This document shows, piece by piece, positions 3,044 through 16,762 of a DNA stretch of 64,000 nucleotides. The DNA is taken from the NCBI GenBank assembly GCA_047495785.1, contig JBLDXI010000024.1:682001-746000 (forward strand). Reading direction: 5' to 3'. The notes under the pieces are model-generated. The model was given only the letters and a program-made list of their open reading frames with translations, ran no database searches and had not been told where the DNA came from. Numbering within the stretch: the stretch's first letter is position 1; every line of letters starts with the position of its first letter. Origin of the DNA: Lepidodermella squamata. Its lineage: Eukaryota; Animalia; Gastrotricha. A program made the position numbers and the translations under genes.

Positions 3044-5165
3044 ATGCTTATGGCCGAAGAGGTGGCCTTCGAATCGGCAGGTATCAACATCACGATGAGG
3101 CCACAGGACGACTTTCAGTGCACCGCCGAACGCCGCCCTGGCACCAGTAAGTTTCATAAATTTGACCGCATCGTTCAGACGTGCATTCGTTTATGACACT
3201 TAAGCTAATGAATTCTCAATTTTCAAAACACGAACGAGCCCTCGTCATACTTATTTGACATAATTAATGGGTCCAGTGTTGATAGCATTTTATTGAGGAT
3301 TGCTATGCGTTGAAATTCAAGATCATTTCCATTGACTTGGGATATCCGGACTTTTTTGTCGAGACGAACTTTTTCTATACAGCTATTTTTGTATTGCAGA
3401 CGTCGAACTCACCGCGTATGGAATCATCTACCCGCTGCTGACTGTTATTGTCATTTTTACTAATGTTAACGGCATCGTTGTATTAGTTCGTTTGAAAAAC
3501 TTCACGCAGACAAAGTAAGCAGAATTTTGAAATCTGAGAAATTTCATTAAAACTCCTTCCCACAGCATGTTATTGCTCAGCATATTCATCGTCGATTTGT
3601 TAACAACAGCCATCCCTTCCCCGAAATTCCTGCTTCAGTATACGCTGAATGAAAACCGGCCGCAGATAGCCTACTACCCGTGGTGTTACCTGAGCAGCCT
3701 TCTATTCCCAGTTCTGCCCATCATCACCAACAACATCAGCATTTGGTTCGTCGTGGCCCTTACGATTCAGCGGTTCACTTGCGTATGGAAACGCGCTGTT
3801 TACGACCGGGTCTTCTCGCGGCGCAACATCGTGGCAATAATTGTTGGCATCGCAATTTTTACAACCGCTTTTCATTCAGTTCTACTCATCGACAATTACC
3901 GCCGGCCGCTGACTTGCAACTCAGGGACAGGCTCGACGTACACTATTTGCAACGAGGACCCGTCTACGTTTGTAATACCCGGCGGTACCGATTTGGAGCT
4001 TTACGTTCTATCGACTTACTATTTATCGCGAATCGCCGTCTTTCATTTTATCCCAATTTTCGCTATTGCGGTGTCCAATTTGCTACTTATTCGAATTTTG
4101 AAATCAGCAGAACAGCGGCGTAGTCGTCTTTTCAGCCAGAAGACGAAAACGCAAGACAGTCTGACTCGGCTTGATGAAGACGAGCGGATAACCGTATCAT
4201 CACCAGCGAAAAGCCCACCAGTCAGTAGCCAGGCTAAGAGGAAGTCCAAGGTTTACGAGCAAAATGGCGCGCAAAGCAACGGAAATTTACCGAAAAATCG
4301 TAGTTGGTCCCAACTCGCGTTATCAGCTGTATCTAAAGGCGCTCATAGGCTATCGGTTGCAACGACATCTCAACCCCGAGGCAAGCAATCGTCGATTAGC
4401 GGTGAGACTCCTGCTAGCAAAGGCCAGCGAATGTCGAATACAACGCATATGTTGATGGTGATATCAACGATCTACTTGATTCAACACATTTGCCAGTCGA
4501 TTCTCTTCGTTTCTGGCGTTGCGATGAATGTGCTTGGGCTACCTGAGCCCGAACTGCTGATTCGAGCGATAACCGTTCAAAATCTCATATACTGGGCCGG
4601 CTTTCCAGCCAATTTCTTCCTGTGCATGCACGTCCAAGCACCGTTTCGCGACATGTTCTACTCAATGTACGCCGGGCTGTCCCAGGTTGAAGGCTACTGC
4701 AAGTTCTGCATCTCTTCCGTACCGCTTATTCGGCTTAATAAGTCTGAATCCCTCTTCGGCGACCAGCCTGTCATGAGAAGTTCGATACCTGAAGCTACGA
4801 CAATGCTCACTAATTTCCCTGAAGGTCACAGCTCGGTGCCTTCATCGCCGCCCCAAGCTGGTAACGATAAGGCTGATCAACCGATATCACCTGACCAAGG
4901 TGAATGCAGGCCCCTGTTGAGGTCATCGAGCAATAGCCATAGCCTGGGCTCAGATCTGTATGAAACGCCTGGAATGATGACACCGGAAGACATCGACGAC
5001 CAACCGGTTACGTTGCAAAACGATCACACCGATAATTTGGTTGATTTTTTCTCGAACAACGTCGACGCTGATTTTGACGAATTAACTCCTGTTGAATTGA
5101 AACACTCCAACTCGATAGTTAACCAGAACAAACACGCGACAGTCGAAGATGGGCCTGTCGAGTGA
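3044..5165 (+). CDS. Class A (rhodopsin-like) peptide GPCR, sex-peptide/FMRFamide/myosuppressin-receptor-like; 3 exons (3044-3146, 3400-3514, 3566-5165)
   Basis: Two GT-AG introns join the exons in frame to give MLMAEEVAFESAGINIT...YGIIYPLLTVIVIFTNVNGIVVL (TM1) followed by the 532-aa ORF. Seven hydrophobic segments; the DRY-equivalent is 'ALTIQRF' and TM7 reads 'FPANFFLC'; N-terminal NIT sequon; long third intracellular loop. Confidence 0.88.
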
Positions 5166-6922
5166 GCTGCGTTTGTATTTCGAAAGCCTTTTTTCGGTGT
5201 TTACTTGTCAAAACAGTCCAGCCGCTTCGGCTTTCACGTGGATCACGAAACGTTGATAATTTTTCGTACTCAACGAGAAACGTTCGCCTGCTTCCACGAA
5301 GCCGAGATGATTAAAACCCGTGATTTTTACCTGTTTTAGCCGTAGAGCAGATTTCGTTTGACGTCCTATACCTGCTGTTTACGGAATCAAACTCGATGTG
5401 TGCGTCTCTATTGATGTTATTCCAAGGCGTGGGATAGCCGTTGCCTAGTTTTATAGTTCTCGCTATAAATATTTACCTTTTCGTCTTTTATGAAAAGATG
5501 ATTCATCTTTGGTTTGATGAAAAAATTAGCAATCATCACATCGGAAACCGATAGAATGTATCTAATGAAGGCCTTAACAGAGCGATATTTCCTCAAACTT
5601 CGTCATGGTATAAATTTCTGCATTTATTTCGTTTTAAAATACTTGATAAAATTAAACCGCGGCATGGTGACACGTTCGAAGAATAAAATGTCGGTTATAC
5701 GCGGATACTGAATACACATCGATTGTTTTTATGCTAGACTAGCTCTGGACTCAATGACGGCATCAATTATCGGCGATGGTTCGAGTATCATCGAGACATA
5801 AACTGGTCACGTTTTTCGGGAAATCAGATAATGATGAAAAAATATCGAGGCCGCGAGCTGTAATGTTTTCACACTGGAAATATTTATTGCACCGTAATTA
5901 TTTGGCCTTATAACGTGTCCCGCTGAGCTGATACAACGAAATGCTGGACTTGATGTTAAAAAAATACGAATGTTTTGGATTATCCTGCCAAAATGTAAAT
6001 GAAAGAATCAGAGAATTGTGAGGCAATAGCAAAATGATAAGGCGCCGGGATCTTCTCACTCACTCGCGCTCTCGTTGCGCAAAGCGGCCGTAATAAAAAA
6101 AAAGCGCAAAGAGGCGAAAGTGCGGCTATCTCTTTGCCAATATTATTACTATTTGCAATATTGCTGCATCTCACATGGTATATCATAAACTTATCAATAT
6201 TTTCACCGCGTTCGTTTATAATAATAATCTATGATAAATGGCTGTGGCTCTGGTAATAATAATAATAAATTCTCCAAGTGGCTTTGAAGAACCATATGCT
6301 GGTTTCTCACTTCTCGCTTTTATCTATAAACACGAGGAGCCAATCTGCGCTGCTGCTTCCGAGCCTGTGTCATCCCGCCCAGTGCAGTGCTCGGCTTTTG
6401 GGATTCCAGACTACGCGCCTTGCCATAAACATGATATAATATCGCGCCACTATACTATCATTATCACCATCGTTTGCCGTCGCCTCATTACTATTATTAT
6501 ATTTTTAGCTGCAGCAACACCAATAGCATCTACTTATTCACATTGAAGTCAACTTTTTTCGACCCCCGAAACGTAACGCAATCCCCTCGCGATGCCGAGG
6601 ACGAAAACTAGAAGGCAAATTGCATTACTGTAATACTGTGGCCCGTTTAGTGAGTAGCTGGTGCATGCAATTGTAGCCCGCGGGTCATCCTGCGCTTTCG
6701 TAGAAGAACAATAATTCAGCCGCATGACAATGGCGGCAATTTATTTTCCGCATCATTATTACTTTTAACTATCAAACTATAGGAGACTATTAGCATAAAA
6801 TCTATCGCGTCTCAATTTCCACCATGTACAAGCAGCTCGGTGTCAATTGATGTCGCGTTTACCACCAGCAGCATTATGATTTTTCGTTATTTACGTGTTT
6901 CGCGATAAAAATACATCGGAAA

Positions 6923-7810
6923 ATGTTCTGTAAAAGTTCCAAGGCTAACAACAGCCAGCAGCAACTCACGTCTGTATCAATGCACGTCGGTGACGCGAAT
7001 TTACGTCGGAAATTGATGGAACTTGGGGGAGAGACTACGCTGAACTCAATCGCGGTCGGAAATACGTCGACTCAGGGCGTGTTTTCCACCGAAACTTCCA
7101 GCAGTATGTGGAGCCGTGTTATTCTGCCCCCTCTGCAGGTCGTCAATATAAACGGCCGGTGGTTCAGCCTCGACGACAATCTGCTTCTTATGTACAAAAC
7201 ACTGAAAAAGAACCGCTTGGTTACTTCTGTTCCGATCACTGTTGTTGCTATTGAAAGCGTTCCGCCCGGTATTCAGGCTATGATGGCTCAAAGAGCTGAG
7301 AACCAGCACACCTGCGTTGATAATGATCGAATTTCAAGCCGGCATCGACGAGCTGTTGATAGTGATGACGATTCAATCTCCCTTGAATCTTCGTCATCCG
7401 GCTCAAATTGCTGTAAATCAGACGGGAACGAATTCTGCTCGAGCAGTTGTCACACTTCCGATGACGAGCGGATATTTCAGAATAATCCGACCGCGTCGAC
7501 CACGCGAGCAAGTGCACCTCCCGAGCAGCGTCTTGAAAACCCAAGTAATATCGCTTGTGGTAATTCGATCACAAAGCCGAAATCGCGACCTCCTCGTCGA
7601 AATCGAGCCGAAAATCGGCATCGAAAACAGCGAAGTGCTAACAACCCCGGTTCAACTAGTCAGCAAAAAACGGCGAAGGTAAAAGGTTGCTACAACTGCA
7701 AAGCAACGTCGTCAACGGCCGTCGCTCAGGCGGATGAAACTAAGCCCACGACAGGGTCGTGCAGTTGCAACGACGATTGTGATGGCGACGTTTCAAGTAC
7801 GAATGACTGA
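6923..7810 (+). CDS. Intronless hypothetical protein (295 aa) with a possible ParB/sulfiredoxin-like globular segment and a Ser/Cys-rich disordered tail
   Basis: Long ORF preceded by AAA; AATAAA near 7833. The segment 'LPPLQVVNINGRWFSLDDNLLLMYKTL...VTSVPITVV' resembles the ParB/Srx core pattern. Confidence 0.7.
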   Translation: MFCKSSKANNSQQQLTSVSMHVGDANLRRKLMELGGETTLNSIAVGNTSTQGVFSTETSSSMWSRVILPPLQVVNINGRWFSLDDNLLLMYKTLKKNRLVTSVPITVVAIESVPPGIQAMMAQRAENQHTCVDNDRISSRHRRAVDSDDDSISLESSSSGSNCCKSDGNEFCSSSCHTSDDERIFQNNPTASTTRASAPPEQRLENPSNIACGNSITKPKSRPPRRNRAENRHRKQRSANNPGSTSQQKTAKVKGCYNCKATSSTAVAQADETKPTTGSCSCNDDCDGDVSSTND

Positions 7811-9055
7811 AGGACATTCAGGCTTCCCGAGCAATAAAACATGAATCATCATCTATTATACCACCTGCTTTAGAATCTCGGCTTCCGATTTCATCGATCA
7901 TCTTCCTTAAATTATCAAATTATTTTCATATTGATAACTTGATATTACTTGCGTTAGAACATTTCCAGTCATTTTTTAGCAATTGATGATCCGACTCAGG
8001 AACAGTAATAAAGATTGATACATTTGATGTACCCCGCTGACTTTTTTATAACTTAAGGGCGTTAGCGTAGTCTCCGAGTGGGCTAAAAATAGCTTAAAAA
8101 AGCTTCAATGAATTCAAAAAAGTAGCAAAGCTATTTATAAAAATATATTACGCCCACTTTTCAAAATAATTGTTCATATCTTTGTCCTGGAATTATTATT
8201 TTTCAAAATTTCACGTTAACGAAAACTCGGCATTCCTTGCGGCAATTGTTAAATTTGGTGCGATTTTAGAATGAGTTGGGCAGCTGATCTTCGTCTGAAA
8301 TCAATAAAAGAAAAACGCGAAAAACAAAGGTCAAAACTAATCATTTTATTATTAAATTTCTTTACCTTCGGTAAACAACAGAACCGTAGAAGATTCGATA
8401 TAGGTAATAATAATAATAGTAATAACAGTAGAAGTGAAGATTAATAGCGTAAAAACGGGTGAAGTAGAGCATGCGAAATCCGTTTTGTTATCGGAACAAC
8501 CAATATCATCTGCACCCCGCCTCTAATTTGCATGCTGCAGCAGCGCATCAGCAGTGAAAACAGCAAAGATAATAATAATAATATATCGCAGGATTAAAAC
8601 CGACTCAGCACTGGAATTATGCAAACTCTCCGCCGCGCGTTTCATTCGTAAAATGAACAACCCAAACAAGAATAATATTTGCCAATCTCGAAAAGGCTTT
8701 GCAGCTGCGAAAACCAACAACGCAAGATGAAAGCAAGCATGTAGGCCACTTTTCCCGAGCTTTACAAATTGCTTGACCAAATATAGCAGCACAACAGCGG
8801 AAGCACGAATTGTTGATATATTTACACAAGACTTTCGAAGTTTGGTGAAGAAAAAAGGTAGAAACGAGATATAATTTTTTTTGTTTAGAAAAAACAAGAA
8901 CGGCTCATGAAACAAAATAATTTCCCCGCGAGCCGAACATATCAAGCTTTGTTTATCCATGCATTTTTGATCATGCGAAAAATTGAGATTTGTAGTAATA
9001 GATACGAGACTATTAGGCCGGGACGTCATTTTTTGAGCCGAAATCGTCGCGCGAA

Positions 9056-9542
9056 TCAGCAGCGTTCATTCGGCAGGCTAAGACTGAGCGCCGACGACTG
9101 GCCCTGCAGGCGGTCGTCGTTGATAATGCCGGCCATGTCATCGTCGTCCTCCGTCCACAGGCTTGTATGGCCGTTGCGGTGCTGGATCGGACGCATCGAG
9201 GTCATGGCGTTGCTCACTCGGTGGAAAACGCGCCGGCCGACTTGACGCGTCGGTTTCGAGAAGTAACACAGCCCAAGCATGCCCATGAGGCCGATGACGG
9301 CGAAACTGGCGATTGGAATGAAGATCATAGCCATCAACTGAGTGTTCCAGTCATCGAAGTGAATCGACGGAAATTCCAACAAATTCCAATCAGCAACCCT
9401 AAAATTCAAATAATTTTAAAAACGCCCACCTTAAAATTCAGTTGAAAACATACGGAGTAGTCGTGTTTGAAATTTCATGTTGCGTCGAGGTTAAATTGAC
9501 ACTGGGTACTGTCGTGGTGGTCGAGTAGTTCGATATCGCCAT
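9056..9542 (-). CDS. Small single-pass membrane glycoprotein without a signal peptide, 2 exons
   Basis: Exon 1 (MAISNYSTTTTVPSVNLTSTQHEISNTTTP) splices through a gtatgt...ttttag intron in frame to ORF 9056..9409. Three N-glycosylation sequons, TM 'LMAMIFIPIASFAVIGLMGMLGLCYF', then a basic cytosolic segment. Confidence 0.75.
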
Positions 9543-9832
9543 CGATTCATTTTGAGATAATTGAGGCTCCAAGATCATTTTACCATTAAATGCCTAAGCA
9601 AAAGTAAAATGAGACTTCTAGTAAGAAAATTTAATTTCGAACAATGTGCTTTGAATAGACCACAAAAGTCGATTTATGACTACGTAGTTCAGTATAAAGT
9701 GACGTTTTCGATTGTAAGTGATCTGTTTGCTCATAGTAACGAAAAAAAAGAAAAACATTTGTGCGTGTTTTACTAGGAAGACATTGCTCATTGTATCACT
9801 GAAAGATCATAGAAGAATGACACCGGTTCGTT

Positions 9833-11086
9833 TCACAGAAAGAAGACCCAAAAGAGAAGGATCAGCAGCGAGAAGGTTGTACCATAAAACAGCATTTCGT
9901 TATTCAAAAAAGACTGCTGCGACGAATTAACAGCTCGAGACCGGCTGACAACCGGAACAGCCCCGCCAAACGTTTTCAGCCCGCTTAAAACTCGCGGGCT
10001 ATCATCGGAACCAATGAGAGACGAGACTTGCACGTCGTTTCCGGTCAAATAGCTGCCCTGGTCGTTTAGACCGAACCAAAACAGCAAAAAACGGTTGAGC
10101 AAAGATTCGTTTTGAGCTGGACTCGCGCCTGGTTTTGCAGCTACAGTCGACCCAGGCTGGGTCGAGACTGGTTTCGGTTGAGATTGCGTCGATGTAGCCA
10201 TCATTCCCATTTCATCCGAAACAGACAAAGCCCGCCGGAATCGCAGTTGTTTAGGCAATGTGCTGTTTCCGAAAACCGGCGAAATTCTCTTGTAATCGAA
10301 TCCACCCTCAGTTGCAAGCTGGTTCTCGATGAATTTCATATCATCCATCTGCCGGACAGTGAAAGACGAGCCGATATCTGGCGTTTTACTCGCGCCTTGT
10401 CCGAAAATGGTGGCTGCAGCTCGGGCCTGATTAGCATTAGCAAATCGAATGTAGACCCGGTTCGAGGTGAGGGAGAAATCTGTTTTAACCACATCGCCGC
10501 AGCGACGCAGGCGGTCGACAACAATCGAGCGCGCGTCGTCGCTAAAATTTTCGGCAATCACCCAGTTTTCAGCTTCAACTTTCTCAGGAGCGATGTACAA
10601 CGAAGCCGGGGTCTGCGGGCCTTCCATGCACGACATGGGCGAAGCCGCGGGCGACATCGGTCCGCCCATCATGCCAGACTGAGGTCGCCGGCAGAACAAG
10701 CTGGACAGATCAGCGGGATTGCCTGGGGTTTGCGCGGCCCCTGTGCCGGGGAAAGCCATCGAAGTCGACGGAGATCGAGCCCGGCTGCCGAAAGTCGCCG
10801 GAGACATGCCGAAACCGGCCGATGTGTTAATTCCCGGGGTTTTAGGCTGGGTAACGCTTTGACCCGCCCCGAAATACCCGGGTGACATTTGCGGCTGTGG
10901 CTGGTGAGGGGCTGAGGACATCGAAGACGATGCAGTGAGAAAATTCGGAATTTTACCAGTCCCCGAGCTAACATGGGGCGAGTTTACCGCGGCGAACCCG
11001 GAAACAGCAGGAGACGCTGGCATGAGGTTCGACATAGACCGGCGGTTGTGCGTCATTTGAACGGCTTGGTCATCAAAACGCAGCAT
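9833..11086 (-). CDS. NUP35: Nucleoporin Nup35/Nup53 (MPPN-type RRM), intronless, with a C-terminal hydrophobic extension
   Basis: SP/TP-rich N-terminus with an 'IPNFL' motif. The RRM 'WVIAENFSDDARSIVVDRLRRCGDVVKTDFSLTSNRVYIRFANANQARAA' matches the Nup35 RRM pattern. Amphipathic helix 'SLLNRFLLFWFGL'. The ORF-track start at 11203 runs through AT-rich noncoding sequence, so the ATG at 11086 is preferred. Confidence 0.8.
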   Translation of the reverse strand: MLRFDDQAVQMTHNRRSMSNLMPASPAVSGFAAVNSPHVSSGTGKIPNFLTASSSMSSAPHQPQPQMSPGYFGAGQSVTQPKTPGINTSAGFGMSPATFGSRARSPSTSMAFPGTGAAQTPGNPADLSSLFCRRPQSGMMGGPMSPAASPMSCMEGPQTPASLYIAPEKVEAENWVIAENFSDDARSIVVDRLRRCGDVVKTDFSLTSNRVYIRFANANQARAAATIFGQGASKTPDIGSSFTVRQMDDMKFIENQLATEGGFDYKRISPVFGNSTLPKQLRFRRALSVSDEMGMMATSTQSQPKPVSTQPGSTVAAKPGASPAQNESLLNRFLLFWFGLNDQGSYLTGNDVQVSSLIGSDDSPRVLSGLKTFGGAVPVVSRSRAVNSSQQSFLNNEMLFYGTTFSLLILLFWVFFL

Positions 11087-11377
11087 TTTAAATTTAAATA
11101 TTTCTATAATTACTAAATAAAATTGAAAAAAATTTAAGAATGATTTGTCACATATTATACTCTTCACAAGTGCACTTTTTATCCACAGTTTAAAATTTTT
11201 CACGCACTCAGTTCATCGGTGAAAGCTGATTTATCAAGAAGAAGACAGACTGCGTCACAACACATTTATATATAATAATTTTTATGATATAAACTAGTTG
11301 GTTCATGCCACAAATTAAGACACCAGATTTTTCTCAGACAGCCACGCTATCTCTTGTATACTGGAATATAGTTACAT

Positions 11378-14300
11378 CTAGTTGGTTTTCTTCTTTTTCG
11401 AGGAATGGCGAGTGCGTCCCTCCTTCAGTCGGCCATAGCCTGCTATGAACTGCAGAATCCGGTCGACCACCAATGAAAGCACAAGATCTGTCAACATTGT
11501 CTTCAGAATGATGCTTTGCACCTGGAAAAACATAATTAAATCCAAATTTTGCGGCTATAATTGCCTATATACCTCTGGAGCGAGGTCAATAAGTTCAGCT
11601 TGAGCAGCTAAATCAGGCAAAAAGCCAGTCGCCAGGAGAACTAGAGTGCCCATAGCACCGACAATCGACACCAATAGAGGCCGGTTGGCCATGAGCGGTT
11701 CCATGAAAGGTTCTCCCTTGTAGTTGACGGCAAACGTCACAACTTGCATGTAGACCGAGATTAAATAAACGATAGAGTTAACAATATTCGGCTCGAATTT
11801 CACATGCTCCTCCTCAGTCGAGGTAGCAGTCGTGTTTCCTGACAACGTCGAGTTTAGATCTGTCAGATTTGTCAAAGCGTTGGTTTCATTTCCAGTCGCA
11901 GCCAGGCTTAGATCGGTTAAATTAGTTGAATTTAAAGCTTCAGTAACATTGGCAGCGGCGATTGTCGAGTTCTTCGGCGGCATCAAACTCTCGGCCAGCG
12001 TTGTCAGGGTGTAGAGCGAGTAGAAGTGAACGGCGAATTGGGATAAAACCGTAGCGAGCGTGTAGAAATTGAAGATGTTGGGCAGTGGGCGCTTTTTCGA
12101 CAGCGTAGTCAAAGGACGCGAACGTGCGATGAACAAAAAGCACGCGGCCAAGAACAAGCCCTGAGCCGTGGCTTGACCGTCGCTGTAGCGAACGCCACTC
12201 AAGTAGAGCGCAGACTGACTGTAGGCCAGAACAAGGGCATTGACGGCCAAAATTTTGAACATTTGCAGGGTAGTAACCAAAGTGCAACGGCCCTTAAATA
12301 AAGGGAAAACTTTAAAAAAAAATCACCCTTAAAGCAATTTTTTATCCTACCTGTTTGATAACCTGGCAAACCGATCTAACAGACGATAGCTTTGAAGTGA
12401 ATGGAGCTGCGACGGAAGCATCGCCGAGTCGAACAATTTGAGCCCGTTCTTCCGCCTCCATTTCAGCCGCTAGATCAGCCATAGCCTTTTGAAGCCGCTC
12501 AGACTGCTGGCCATTCGCGCCTGGAGGCAGGGCGATGTTCCCGAAAGGCCCTGGAATTACAGCAGGAGCTTGACCTGGCTTATTCCGGCCGCCCTGTTGC
12601 GGCTGCTGGGGCGGGAAAACACCACCGGTTTTCGGGGCAGATTCGTGTTTCAACAAGGAGCGAGACAACAAGGCGATACCAACATGGGCGTGCTTCAACG
12701 CAGCAACGTCATTAGTACCATCACCACACATTAAGGTGGTGTATCCAGCGGCTTTCAACGCATTAACAACTCGTTCTTTCTGCTTCGGATCAACTCGAGC
12801 GTAAATTCGAACGCGGGTCAAAATTTTGCGGTAGAGAGCGGCGTGGTTTTCGGTAAACGCGTTCATCACATCACCGGTCATGCAGAAATCGTAGTCGGTA
12901 TCGACAATTTCAGTGAGTGGCACTGTTGTTTTGCCGTCAACGCTTTTCCAAACCAAATTGTGAGAATCGCCGTTAGCAGATCCGTTCGAATGGCTGGTAC
13001 CAGGGCTCAAAATCAACACCTCAGAATCGGTAAAACCAGTCTCTTTCGCGACATGGCATGCAGTGAGCGGATTGTCACCGGTAATCATGACCAGGTGATG
13101 CGAGCTTTTCTTGATCTCACGAATCGCACCAGCTGTGTCAGGTTTCAACGGGCATGAGACGATGAGGAAACCGGCAAATACTAAATTGCTTTCAACAGAG
13201 CTGCGATCCGCCTTAGCCATCGGGACTGGGTCAGCTCGGCCTAAATCCCGGTAAGCCAATGCCAGAACACGACTACCATTTCGGCTGTAACTCGAGCAAA
13301 TTTCATCGTAACCACTCGGAACTTGGACCAACAAGCCGCGAATAACTTCAGGTGCGCCTTTGGTGCAAACCTGGAAGTCGGTTTCCATCGACCCGGTCGA
13401 GGTATGACCGGCAATAACTGTCATGCGTTTCAGGGTAGGACTGAAATGGAAACGGTGATAAATTTTAAAGCCATGGGTGCGGCTTTTCAGCAATTTCGGC
13501 GGCACGACGCAATCTTGTTTAGTCACAGTCCATCCAGCGGCTTGTAAAACGGCCTTTTCCAGAGGATCTCCGACCAGTTCTTCATCAACATTGGCTAAAG
13601 AGTGGCACGAGGCGAGAACGTGAACAGTTTCGAGTGGAGCCTCAGTCACGTCAATGAGTTTTGCCGAATTATCTATACCAGTAACGCCCTCAACAACCAA
13701 TTGCTCAGAGGTTAAAGTGCCAGTTTTGTCAAAGCAACACTGAAAATTTAACTCTTTAATAACCGAGAAATAGAATGGCGAAGTCAACTTACCACATCAA
13801 CTTTCCCGGCAAATGGAATCCTGAATGGTTCCGTGCAAAAAATAGCCATTCTGGCTAGAGCCACGAGTGAATTGTTGACTGCCAGTGACAATTCGATCGG
13901 CAATTCAGGTGGAATGACTGAAGTTAAAATGAGCGAACACTCCAGCAGCAGCTTATAACGGCTTCGTTTCGGGTCCTCACTGCCCTTGATCCACACGTAA
14001 GCAGCGGCAGCAACCGCGAAAATCAGTAAGAACAAAATGAAACCAAACGTTTCAAGATTGTTAGCAGTAACTCGCTTCACACCGAATAAGATAGTCTTCA
14101 GCAATTTTCCTTGACTTGTCGAAAAACCGGTATGGATTACATAAGCCAGACATGAATTGTCCGGGCTTTTGATGCCCTGGCCAGTGCGGCGAGCGTCGCC
14201 CGGCGGCGGTGTGTGTTGCACAATCCTTGTTCCGCCGAATAAAATGTTCGCCTTATCCACCTCAACGTCAAGTTTGTGATCAGGTTCAAGACCGTCGATT

Positions 14301-15256
14301 GATTCTTTCACAACCGGGGTCGATTCGCCGGTTAGCAACGCTTCATCAACAACAGCGGTTCCTTTCAAAATCACCATATCGCAAGGAACTAGTAAGGTTT
14401 CATCGGCAGACCGGCCGATAGATACGATATCACCCGGTAGCAGGGAATCGGTCGATTCTTTCGCCCAGCGACCGCATCGATACACGTTGATCATGTATGG
14501 TTTATTGCCCATTTTTCGAATTTCTGTCATGTTTCGGATTTGCTGGCGCACAACGATGACTTCAAATAGGACAAGCATGAACAGTGTGAAGAGCGAGTAG
14601 TACCAGTACTCGTCGAGGCACCACAGACCCACGCAGAAGACTTGAAAGACGAAAAACGGCGCAGTTGCCCTTTCGGTGAACAACTCGCCGAACTGCGGGA
14701 TATCCATGTCCAGACGATTTCCCTCGTAATCCAATTTCGCATTAGGTAGGCTAATTTCATGCAAACCCTTCGCCGCAACGTAGTCAGAAATCTGGAGATT
14801 GGACGGGTAGGAGGTTGTTACGAATGTATTCGACTCGGTAATGTATTTATAACGCAGTTTTTGAAAGTAAAACCAATATTCGAGATGGCCAGCCGAATTT
14901 TGATCCGTCGAAACCATTCGCCGATGCAGCCGAACAAGAGCCTCTTGGCCGTTGTTAGCGGTAGGTTGGACCATAACGCAATCGGCCTGTTGCACCGAAT
15001 TAACGGAGCGGCATGTCAGTAAGCATCGAATTCGCACCGACCAGTAGCAGGAGAGAGCGGTGAGGATATGCAAAATAGTTATGATAACCATGCCGGTGAC
15101 ACCCATTTCCCACCACTCGGCGAACTCAGTCAGCGAGACCATCCAAACGGCGAACCATAGCACGTAGGCGCTGAGGAATGGTGCCGCATAAACATGCAAG
15201 AACAACGGCCGTTCGACATACAGACGGATTGCCTCAATCTCGTCTGACAACGGCAT
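11378..15256 (-). CDS. ATP13A1: P5A-type ATPase (ER transmembrane-helix dislocase, Spf1 orthologue), 4 exons
   Basis: Motifs LTGES, PPELP, CCFDKTGTLT, KGAPE, MITGDNPLTA and MCGDGTNDV. GT-AG introns at about 13740-13792, 12293-12350 and 11522-11572. The C-terminus KKKKTN* is a KKxx ER-retrieval signal. Confidence 0.96.
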
Positions 15257-15369
15257 ACTTATTTATTTAGCAAACAAACAAAAATCTACTGTGAAAAATT
15301 GAGTAAATTTATTTTCAGACCGTGTTTGGTTAGTGAGAAAAAAGCAGGTTAAAATCTCCACCTTAAAAA

Positions 15370-16762
15370 TCACGCACTCAAGGCGCGAACAACGCGGTTC
15401 GCAAAGAATACGCCGATGAACACGGCGATAAATAGCGATCCAAAAGCCATAGAATACCCGCATAATTCCGAGATAATTGCGAAAATCGGGCTAGCAGTTG
15501 ATACTGCTAATATTGTGGTAATCGTCCACAAGAATTCGAACCTGAATAACTTTGATCGAATCATCAAGTTTTCGTTGAAGCATTTCTTAGCAATATTTTC
15601 AATCCAGCATTCGATGCCAGTGAGATAAAATCCAGCAATTGAAAACGCGAATAGCGCCATTACATTGAGGTAGGACAGATAAAGGAGTAAAAGTCCAGCA
15701 AAGGCGCAAAGAAATGAGGACACCACCTGGGTGCTCGATAAAATCCATCGTAGCCGCGAGGCAATCACAGCAAATAGGTAGAAAAAGCCTTGGAGTAATA
15801 TAGCATATGGATATGGAAGGTATTTCTCGTCGACTAGAAAATACACAGCCCACATTTCCACGGATATTTTCACGAAACAGATCGCCCATTGAGATACCAA
15901 CAAATTTGAATAAAACTGACGATTTCTCATCGAGACAACGCCCCCTTCGACTGTTTTCTCCACGGAGGAAATGTCGCAAGATCCTGAATCATGGGTAAAA
16001 CAGCTGCATATGTATGGAATTACTGACACTACAATAGCTCGTTTAGCGAGCAGAGACATCACTGTAGGAGCTTCGGTCCATAAATCCAATTGCTGATACT
16101 GAAAGATTTTTCAAATGAGATGGCAAGTTTACTTATTAAGCAAATTCAAACCGCAATAATCATTCCAGTGATAGCCCCCACGAACGGAAATATTTGGAAT
16201 ATGTCGATTAGCGTTTTCGAAAATTGAACATCTCCCTTCCAAAAGTTATGAACTGATTTCTTCATGAATCCCGCTACTAAACCTTGCCACAGGGCGCAGT
16301 ATATCAGCTCTAGTCCGCCCCAGCCCTGCGTTTCAATATTGAAAATCCAGCCTAATTCTGACTTTGAAACTTACGCAGAAGAATATCGTGAACATCGCAG
16401 GAAGAGAGAATGCGCAATTTGGAAACATTTTATAAAGCTTTTCAGCGATGAATTTTTCAGAAATTAAAGCAGTGAATAGGAAGACGAAATCAGCAAAGCC
16501 TAGTGAGATCATGGTATCGAATCCGTACTGGTTTATCAAAACCCATTTATACTAAAATTGTAAGTGAATAAAGTATTGATGCCCTTTAGCTGTAAAATGC
16601 TCACCACAGCACGAATAGCAGGAAAAACAAACGGTACAATGTATACCCAGGCAAGAAGAAAAGTTATTCCAAGTTTATAAACCGGCTGTTTAATAATAAT
16701 GAGGCTGTTTCATCAAAAATCATTAAAAAATGACTTACCTGCCATAGCGAAATAATACCCAT
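15370..16762 (-). CDS. Divergent multi-pass MFS-like transporter, multi-exon
   Basis: Short exons joined by about 50-nt GT-AG introns (MGIISLWQ|PVYKLGITFLLAWVYIVPF...|YKWVLINQYGFDT...) lead into the 239-aa hydrophobic ORF. Many TM segments; C-terminal 'STASPIFAIISELCGYSMAF' resembles MFS TM11-12. Confidence 0.65.

Follow-up and report, generated by a model that had tools for sequence, protein, structure and literature searches.

Does the Nup35/Nup53 nucleoporin of an animal end in a transmembrane anchor? The question is raised by a stretch of 64,000 nucleotides from the gastrotrich Lepidodermella squamata (GenBank assembly GCA_047495785.1, contig JBLDXI010000024.1, positions 682,001 to 746,000), here called the window and numbered from its first letter. 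An earlier note on this DNA had described a Nup35-like protein that continues past its membrane-binding helix to a hydrophobic C-terminus. The reading that we favour, with some reserve, is that of an expressed, intronless gene for a fast-evolving inner-ring nucleoporin of the Nup35/Nup53 family, which has kept the helix and added a C-terminus resembling a tail anchor. The product differs from the Nup35 proteins described from other animals, from fungi and from plants by the addition of a flexible linker of 57 residues and a hydrophobic terminal helix of 20 residues.

The gene lies in an intronless open reading frame (ORF) on the minus strand (9833..11203). Translated from the Met at 11086, it encodes 417 amino acids followed by a stop. 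We took this Met as the start because the alignment with the only relative found (P0001, see below) begins exactly there, while the in-frame AT-rich stretch upstream is unconserved. The segment SLLNRFLLFWFGL (residues 328-340) ends in the motif FWFGL and is followed by exactly 77 in-frame residues. The last 20 of these, MLFYGTTFSLLILLFWVFFL, are hydrophobic and directly precede the stop codon (9833-9835). The coordinates and counts given in the earlier note were therefore correct. By our own estimate, based on a GC content of about 43%, the chance of finding 77 open codons is about 0.01.

A word-index protein search with the window protein yielded one relative only, P0001, a predicted protein of 445 residues from a metagenome scaffold of ENA (L001). 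Its identity with the window protein was 44% over 97% of the length, extension included, and it shared with the latter the helix, the extension and the hydrophobic nature of the C-terminus. The degree of conservation varied markedly along the protein. Identity amounted to 42% in the N-terminal region (with an invariant block at residues 45-53), 60% in the RRM, 81% in residues 261-296 (with 92% similarity), 17% in the linker formed by residues 297-326 and 71% in the helix (residues 327-340, with 93% similarity). Within the extension, it was 58% for residues 341-352, 26% for the middle part (353-390) and 55% for the terminal 20 residues, with 80% similarity. Thus, the extension is indeed kept in a relative, hydrophobic tail included. 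The window and scaffold L001 both have a P5A-type ATPase gene immediately upstream, on the same strand, and one of its exons, encoding 490 amino acids, is 81% identical between the two, with identical ORF ends. This synteny and identity indicate that the two source organisms are fairly close to each other. By comparison with the ATPase exon, the 44% identity of the Nup35-like protein indicates that its gene evolves much faster than its neighbour.

JGI metagenome contigs were scanned with back-translated motifs and, separately, with a degenerate pattern for LRFRRALSVSDE; neither scan gave a match. Poor sampling of the phylum would explain why the protein collections held a single relative. A second hit, P0002, came from the HMMER search described below; it was rejected, as this protein contains a six-fold tandem repeat that inflated its score. 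We found no counterpart in known Nup35 proteins for the block of residues 261-296 containing PKQLRFRRALSVSDE. Judging from its conservation, this block is a candidate linear motif for the binding of a partner nucleoporin.

Transcription of the locus was assessed with contigs from three runs (X1, X2 and X3). In X1 and X3, GT..AG introns of 51-58 nt (in the minus-strand reading) were precisely removed from the neighbouring genes at 11520-11570, 12292-12349 and 9398-9452. Run X2 was continuous across the intron edges at 11520-11523 and 12346-12349 into the adjoining exons and had none of these joints. We therefore considered X1 and X3 as derived from RNA and X2 as derived from DNA. A loose end in X1 is, we presume, a SMART cDNA adaptor. 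One X3 contig (9744-10361) continued, unbroken and unspliced, from the 3' untranslated region (UTR) into the post-RRM block, taking in tail, extension and helix on its way. An X1 contig (9687-9984) spanned the stop codon and the tail and carried, before position 9687, a loose end of 22 T residues that is not encoded in the genome. This corresponds therefore to the poly(A) tail of a minus-strand mRNA, added 146 nt past the stop codon. No joint was present in the cDNA-derived contigs between 9687 and 11200, and no contig of the three runs showed a stop or a frameshift after FWFGL, it being understood that contigs can drop rare isoforms. RNA thus covers the extension, with no earlier end or splice, as the earlier note would have it.

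The variants listed between the runs and the window were mostly synonymous where the protein is conserved: 11 of 11 in codons 181-273 (RRM and post-RRM block), seven of eight in codons 334-368, and six of seven in the extension linker (residues 341-397), with two further synonymous variants in the adjacent helix. In the unconstrained linker (codons 307-322), four of the five listed within-species variants were nonsynonymous. None of the variants introduced a stop codon. The extension is under purifying selection, and it is real coding sequence, since it is conserved in the relative, transcribed, and affected by mostly synonymous variants. In the public runs, we also observed two haplotype-like versions of the gene over the region 9985-10331. 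They differ at about 2-3% of the sites, show up in X1 and X2 as bubble contigs, and suggest either that heterozygosity is high or that the organism A and organism B samples, as labelled, differ in strain.

Further evidence concerned the identity of the protein. A profile made from the window protein and P0001 was compared with 177,635 PDB sequences (E up to 10). It gave six matches, all of them Nup35/Nup53 RRMs (E 0.008-0.15), from human, mouse, Xenopus-type and Dictyostelium entries. A phmmer search of the PDB sequences with the whole protein gave no match. An AlphaFold2 model, computed from the two-sequence alignment, had an overall predicted local distance difference test score (pLDDT) of 43.5 and contained a single confident domain (residues 172-260, pLDDT 69-85) with a beta-alpha-beta-beta-alpha-beta topology. 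Nup35 MPPN chains occupied ranks 1-6 in Foldseek (E 8e-6 to 3e-5, template modelling score by target about 0.8, 23-25% identity) and ranks 1-3 in VIA-align (Z 11.7, 11.7 and 10.8; root mean square deviation 2.4, 80 residues aligned, 22-23% identity). The neighbours found with a protein language model included 18 clusters with RRM_Nup35, of 268-405 amino acids (score 0.94, 209 of 256 features shared), and the ten best family-bearing neighbours were all Nup35. No usable match was obtained when this search was made with residues 261-417 alone. The architecture also matched that of Nup35, the AlphaFold2 profile indicating a disordered N-terminus, a central RRM and a disordered C-terminal region. 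We conclude with good confidence that the window protein is a divergent member of the Nup35/Nup53 family. Of the orthology claimed earlier, membership of the family stands, on sequence evidence from Pfam and the PDB that is weak though specific and on stronger evidence from the fold and the language model, while the RRM_Nup35 score remains under the curated Pfam cut-off.

The last 19 residues of the protein have a mean Kyte-Doolittle hydropathy of 2.14, as compared with 0.74 for the best 19-residue window outside the tail. The approximate, position-independent sum on the Hessa scale was -2.2 kcal/mol for the tail of the window protein and -4.1 for that of P0001, and no value below +7 was found elsewhere in either protein. 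The hydrophobic moment of the tail (0.05-0.06) is close to zero, indicating that it is uniformly hydrophobic rather than amphipathic. AlphaFold2 predicted one continuous helix at residues 391-416 (pLDDT 75-81), and Arg residues are found in the flank upstream of the tail in both species. By hydropathy, the window protein, whose N-terminus is polar, has neither a signal peptide at that end nor a membrane segment besides the tail. A glycosylphosphatidylinositol signal was considered for the tail and rejected because of this lack of a signal peptide. The tail, with its transmembrane-grade hydropathy at the extreme C-terminus, has the sequence features of a tail anchor. What holds of the tail anchor proposed earlier is thus a single hydrophobic segment at the very end of the protein, as judged from hydropathy and helix prediction; its insertion into a membrane is a prediction.

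The AlphaFold2 model contains a helix at residues 329-337, within the conserved segment 327-340, and this helix is not terminal. The earlier note had equated SLLNRFLLFWFGL with the C-terminal helix of vertebrate Nup35. Searches of the PDB sequences with the helix region and with a helix profile gave no match, and the terminal motif of vertebrate Nup35 gave none in the literature search. The equivalence is therefore one that we infer: segment 327-340 appears to be the positional counterpart of the C-terminal membrane-binding helix of Nup53, by its position and character. To this extent the earlier equation may hold, strict equivalence lacking support from the sequence searches.

In Xenopus Nup53, the last eight residues are needed for binding to liposomes and to NDC1, and the terminal Trp for membrane deformation and interphase pore assembly; membrane binding also depends on dimerisation of the RRM, which becomes monomeric when F172 and W203 are mutated to Glu (PMC3474928). 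An ungapped profile alignment placed Glu179 and Arg210 of the window protein opposite F179 and W210 of human NUP35. Because of the residue identity and the spacing of 31, these appear to be the positions of F172 and W203 in Xenopus. The codons concerned are at 10550-10552 and 10457-10459 on the minus strand, and both residues are invariant in P0001. One may speculate that a charged pair, forming a cross-subunit salt bridge, has taken over at the interface, or that the RRM has become monomeric and the anchor compensates for the lost avidity of the dimer.

Several points weigh against the view that this is a Nup35 nucleoporin with a tail anchor. The genome coverage amounts to one 64-kb window, so that a canonical second copy of Nup35 may exist elsewhere, and the tail is so far found in two species, which are fairly close to each other. 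The tail ends the protein without any lumenal residues, and the insertion energies on the Hessa scale are approximate. The only Pfam match of the window protein, RRM_Nup35 (PF05172, E 0.0046), reached 17.4 bits for a cut-off of 24, and that of P0001, Nup35_RRM_2 (PF14605, E 0.026), reached 14.8 bits for a cut-off of 27. In VIA-align, the best generic RRMs had a Z score of about 10, a modest margin from the 11.7 of Nup35. Finally, an exhaustive HMMER search of 1.84 billion representatives with an RRM-plus-tail profile provided no bridge to canonical Nup35, P0001 being the sole real match.

These points can be accommodated in different ways. The protein may be a lineage-specific paralogue of Nup35 with a tail-anchored role in the endoplasmic reticulum (ER) or nuclear envelope, outside of the pore scaffold, the canonical soluble Nup35 being encoded elsewhere in the genome. 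Its very fast evolution compared with the neighbouring gene (44% versus 81% identity), the replacement of the dimerisation residues by Glu179 and Arg210, and the examination of a single window would all agree with this. However, the full Nup35 architecture, helix included, has been retained and is constrained, and Nup35 is single-copy in most animals. We consider a paralogue unlikely, though worth bearing in mind.

The protein could also be a true Nup35 orthologue whose C-terminus does not span the bilayer and serves as a second, stronger peripheral helix dipping into the membrane or as a protein-protein contact. The presence of Gly, Thr, Thr and Ser in the first half of the segment and the lack of a lumenal flank would suit such a role, and the case for insertion is drawn from hydropathy. 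Against this, a segment of 19-20 residues with a Kyte-Doolittle value of 2.1 and a moment of 0.05-0.06 lacks amphipathic character, its estimated energy of insertion is below zero in each of the two species, and AlphaFold2 predicts one continuous helix. We regard this peripheral role as rather doubtful.

Another possibility is that the protein is an unrelated tail-anchored protein that merely shares the generic RRM fold with Nup35, as might be suggested by the sub-threshold Pfam scores, the failure of HMMER to reach canonical Nup35 and the Z scores of generic RRMs. This is difficult to reconcile with the fact that the six PDB profile matches were all Nup35/Nup53, that Nup35 headed the rankings of Foldseek and VIA-align and had the highest sequence identity in them (22-25%), that the ten best family-bearing language-model neighbours were Nup35 and that the architecture is that of Nup35; we find it very improbable. 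Lastly, we found nothing in favour of an artefact (unspliced intron, 3' UTR read-through or assembly error) in a protein that would end near FWFGL, and such an artefact is scarcely credible in view of the 77 stop-free codons, the amino-acid conservation in a second species, tail included, the poly(A) site past the stop codon and the agreement of three independent runs, and intron read-through is ruled out as the origin of the extension by this conservation, the unspliced RNA contigs and the synonymous variants.

If the protein is indeed a Nup35 with a tail anchor, it would be synthesized on free ribosomes and its terminal segment would then be inserted post-translationally into the ER and outer nuclear membrane, a mode of insertion that we propose because the hydrophobic segment is the last part to be made. 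Nothing would protrude into the lumen, the entire nucleoporin part facing the cytosol and the pore side. Lateral diffusion would bring the protein to the pore membrane, where linear nucleoporin-binding motifs would keep it in place. Candidates for these motifs are the block of residues 261-296 and, in the N-terminal region, the KIPNFLTAS block. The retained helix (residues 327-340), 57 residues away from the anchor, would rest on the surface of the membrane. Membrane insertion, localisation at the pore and the identity of the partners are all predictions from sequence. It appears improbable that the anchor compensates for lost or divergent Ndc1, Pom121 or Gp210. We are also doubtful, if slightly less so, about the wider proposal that Nup35 independently became, in an animal lineage, an integral, tail-anchored protein of the pore membrane, together with a rebuilt or lost dimer interface and/or the loss or strong divergence of Ndc1, Gp210 and Pom121. 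If true, this rewiring of pore anchoring would parallel what has been proposed for trypanosomes.

The fastening of the pore scaffold to the membrane is among its least conserved and least understood aspects. An animal Nup35 with both a helix and a tail anchor would bear on whether a permanent anchor can replace the avidity of a dimer or the binding to NDC1. The practical reach of this is limited, as the evidence is computational and the host an obscure meiofaunal species. The features of the gene are listed in the table.

Table. Features of the Nup35-like gene in the window and the evidence for each
Feature	Position	Strand	Evidence
Nup35-like intronless coding sequence, 417 amino acids plus stop	9833..11086	-	ORF and translation; Met33 of P0001 aligns with the Met; no joints in cDNA-derived contigs
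N-terminal region rich in Ser, Pro and Gly (residues 1-161), predicted to be disordered and containing the conserved KIPNFLTAS block	10604..11086	-	AlphaFold2 pLDDT <50 over residues 1-171; 42% identity to P0001, with an invariant block at residues 45-53
Nup35/MPPN-type RRM, residues ~170-260	10307..10579	-	Pfam (below cut-off), PDB profile search, Foldseek, VIA-align, AlphaFold2 topology
Post-RRM block, residues 261-296, containing PKQLRFRRALSVSDE	10199..10306	-	Highest conservation within the protein
Unconstrained linker, residues 297-326	10109..10198	-	17% identity to P0001; pLDDT <50; mostly nonsynonymous variants
Hydrophobic/amphipathic helix, residues 327-340	10067..10108	-	AlphaFold2 helix 329-337; position; conservation with P0001
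Extension linker from helix to tail, residues 341-397	9896..10066	-	Proximal 12 residues conserved, middle variable
Hydrophobic C-terminus (residues 398-417), predicted to be a transmembrane tail anchor	9836..9895	-	Hydropathy, AlphaFold2 helix, conservation
3' UTR, with poly(A) addition site at 9687	9687..9832	-	X1 contig with non-templated poly-T end

The P5A-type ATPase gene (ATP13A1/Spf1-like) directly upstream occupies positions 11379-16089 on the minus strand, and 3885-7310 of scaffold L001 in the relative, the adjacency of the two genes being conserved. Its introns of 51 and 58 nt (GT..AG) were confirmed by the RNA contigs, and its transcripts extend to about 11156-11212, i.e. to about 70-125 nt from the ATG of the Nup35-like gene at 11086. 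This close pair may represent an operon-like arrangement. P5A-ATPases clear the ER of tail-anchored proteins that were wrongly inserted; we consider the presence of such a gene beside one for a predicted tail-anchored protein as a curious coincidence and, for now, nothing more. A language-model search with the ATPase exon pointed to no useful taxon. A small gene (8378-9550, minus strand) begins a few hundred bases after the poly(A) site of the Nup35-like gene. It is covered by a cDNA contig, has a 55-nt intron (9398-9452), and the ORF of its main exon (9056-9409) codes for a short product that has a single hydrophobic segment, an acidic tail and no Pfam match. An intronless gene at 3567-5165 on the plus strand encodes a G protein-coupled receptor (GPCR) of the rhodopsin family (532 amino acids) that matches the 7tm_1 profile and that of Srw-type chemoreceptors. 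The gene content of the window (rhodopsin-type GPCR, NHL repeats and USP genes) supports an animal-type origin. Rfam and tRNA scans of the 64 kb gave no match.

Comparison with known systems starts with vertebrate Nup35/Nup53 (human NUP35 and Xenopus Nup53; PDB 1WWH, 4LIR, 8OZB and 7R5J/K). Like the window protein, these have a central MPPN-type RRM (22-25% identity), disordered flanks and a hydrophobic helix C-terminal to the RRM, which in Xenopus is the site that binds and deforms membranes (PMC3474928). The Xenopus helix is the absolute C-terminus, whereas that of the window protein is internal and followed by 77 residues that lead to a predicted transmembrane segment. The vertebrate dimer residues (F172 and W203 in Xenopus numbering) would moreover correspond to Glu179 and Arg210. 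Yeast Nup53 and Nup59 are built on the family's plan, including an amphipathic helix at the C-terminus by which membranes are bound and tubulated (PMC8700311), but have no transmembrane segment where the window protein has a predicted one. The fungal NUP53_C domain (PF28376) was not detected in the window protein by the Pfam scan, and the Pichia Nup53 RRM reached a Z score of 9.3 in VIA-align, below the vertebrate matches. Tail-anchored proteins such as Sec61-beta, cytochrome b5 and LRRC59 also have a single hydrophobic C-terminal segment, no signal peptide and a cytosolic bulk. LRRC59 is reported to be a tail-anchored ER protein that gets to the nuclear envelope, with the inner nuclear membrane as its target (PMC6359192). 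Generic tail-anchored proteins are, however, unrelated in sequence to the window protein, whose cytosolic part is that of a nucleoporin.

The closest precedent, absent from the earlier note, is TbNup65, the Nup35/Nup53 orthologue of Trypanosoma brucei, which means that the arrangement is not unprecedented. TbNup65 is membrane-integral by carbonate extraction, its transmembrane helix is conserved across kinetoplastids, and it was proposed to be the sole identified anchor of the pore, which led to the suggestion that amphipathic and transmembrane helices are interchangeable anchors (PMC4758718). A review from 2021 describes this helix as unique in the orthologous group and as replacing the amphipathic motif (PMC8421043). 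Like the window protein with its predicted tail anchor, TbNup65 combines a Nup35-type RRM with a transmembrane segment near the C-terminus. Trypanosomes are without recognisable Ndc1, Gp210 and Pom121. Unlike the window protein, in which the helix and the predicted anchor occur together, it is described as having the transmembrane helix in place of the ALPS motif (amphipathic lipid packing sensor), and its host belongs to Discoba and not to the animals. The HMMER search with the RRM-plus-tail profile returned no kinetoplastid protein and thus gave no indication of common descent with the TbNup65 tail. This lack of a detectable sequence relation makes an independent origin likely; the resemblance to TbNup65 is most likely convergent, a likeness in working and not in membership. 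The literature searched contained no description of a Nup35 with a transmembrane segment from an animal, a fungus or a plant. The window protein is thus probably a second, independent case of a Nup35 with a transmembrane segment, this time in an animal and with the helix kept instead of replaced. If so, it would represent a natural intermediate that carries both types of anchor.

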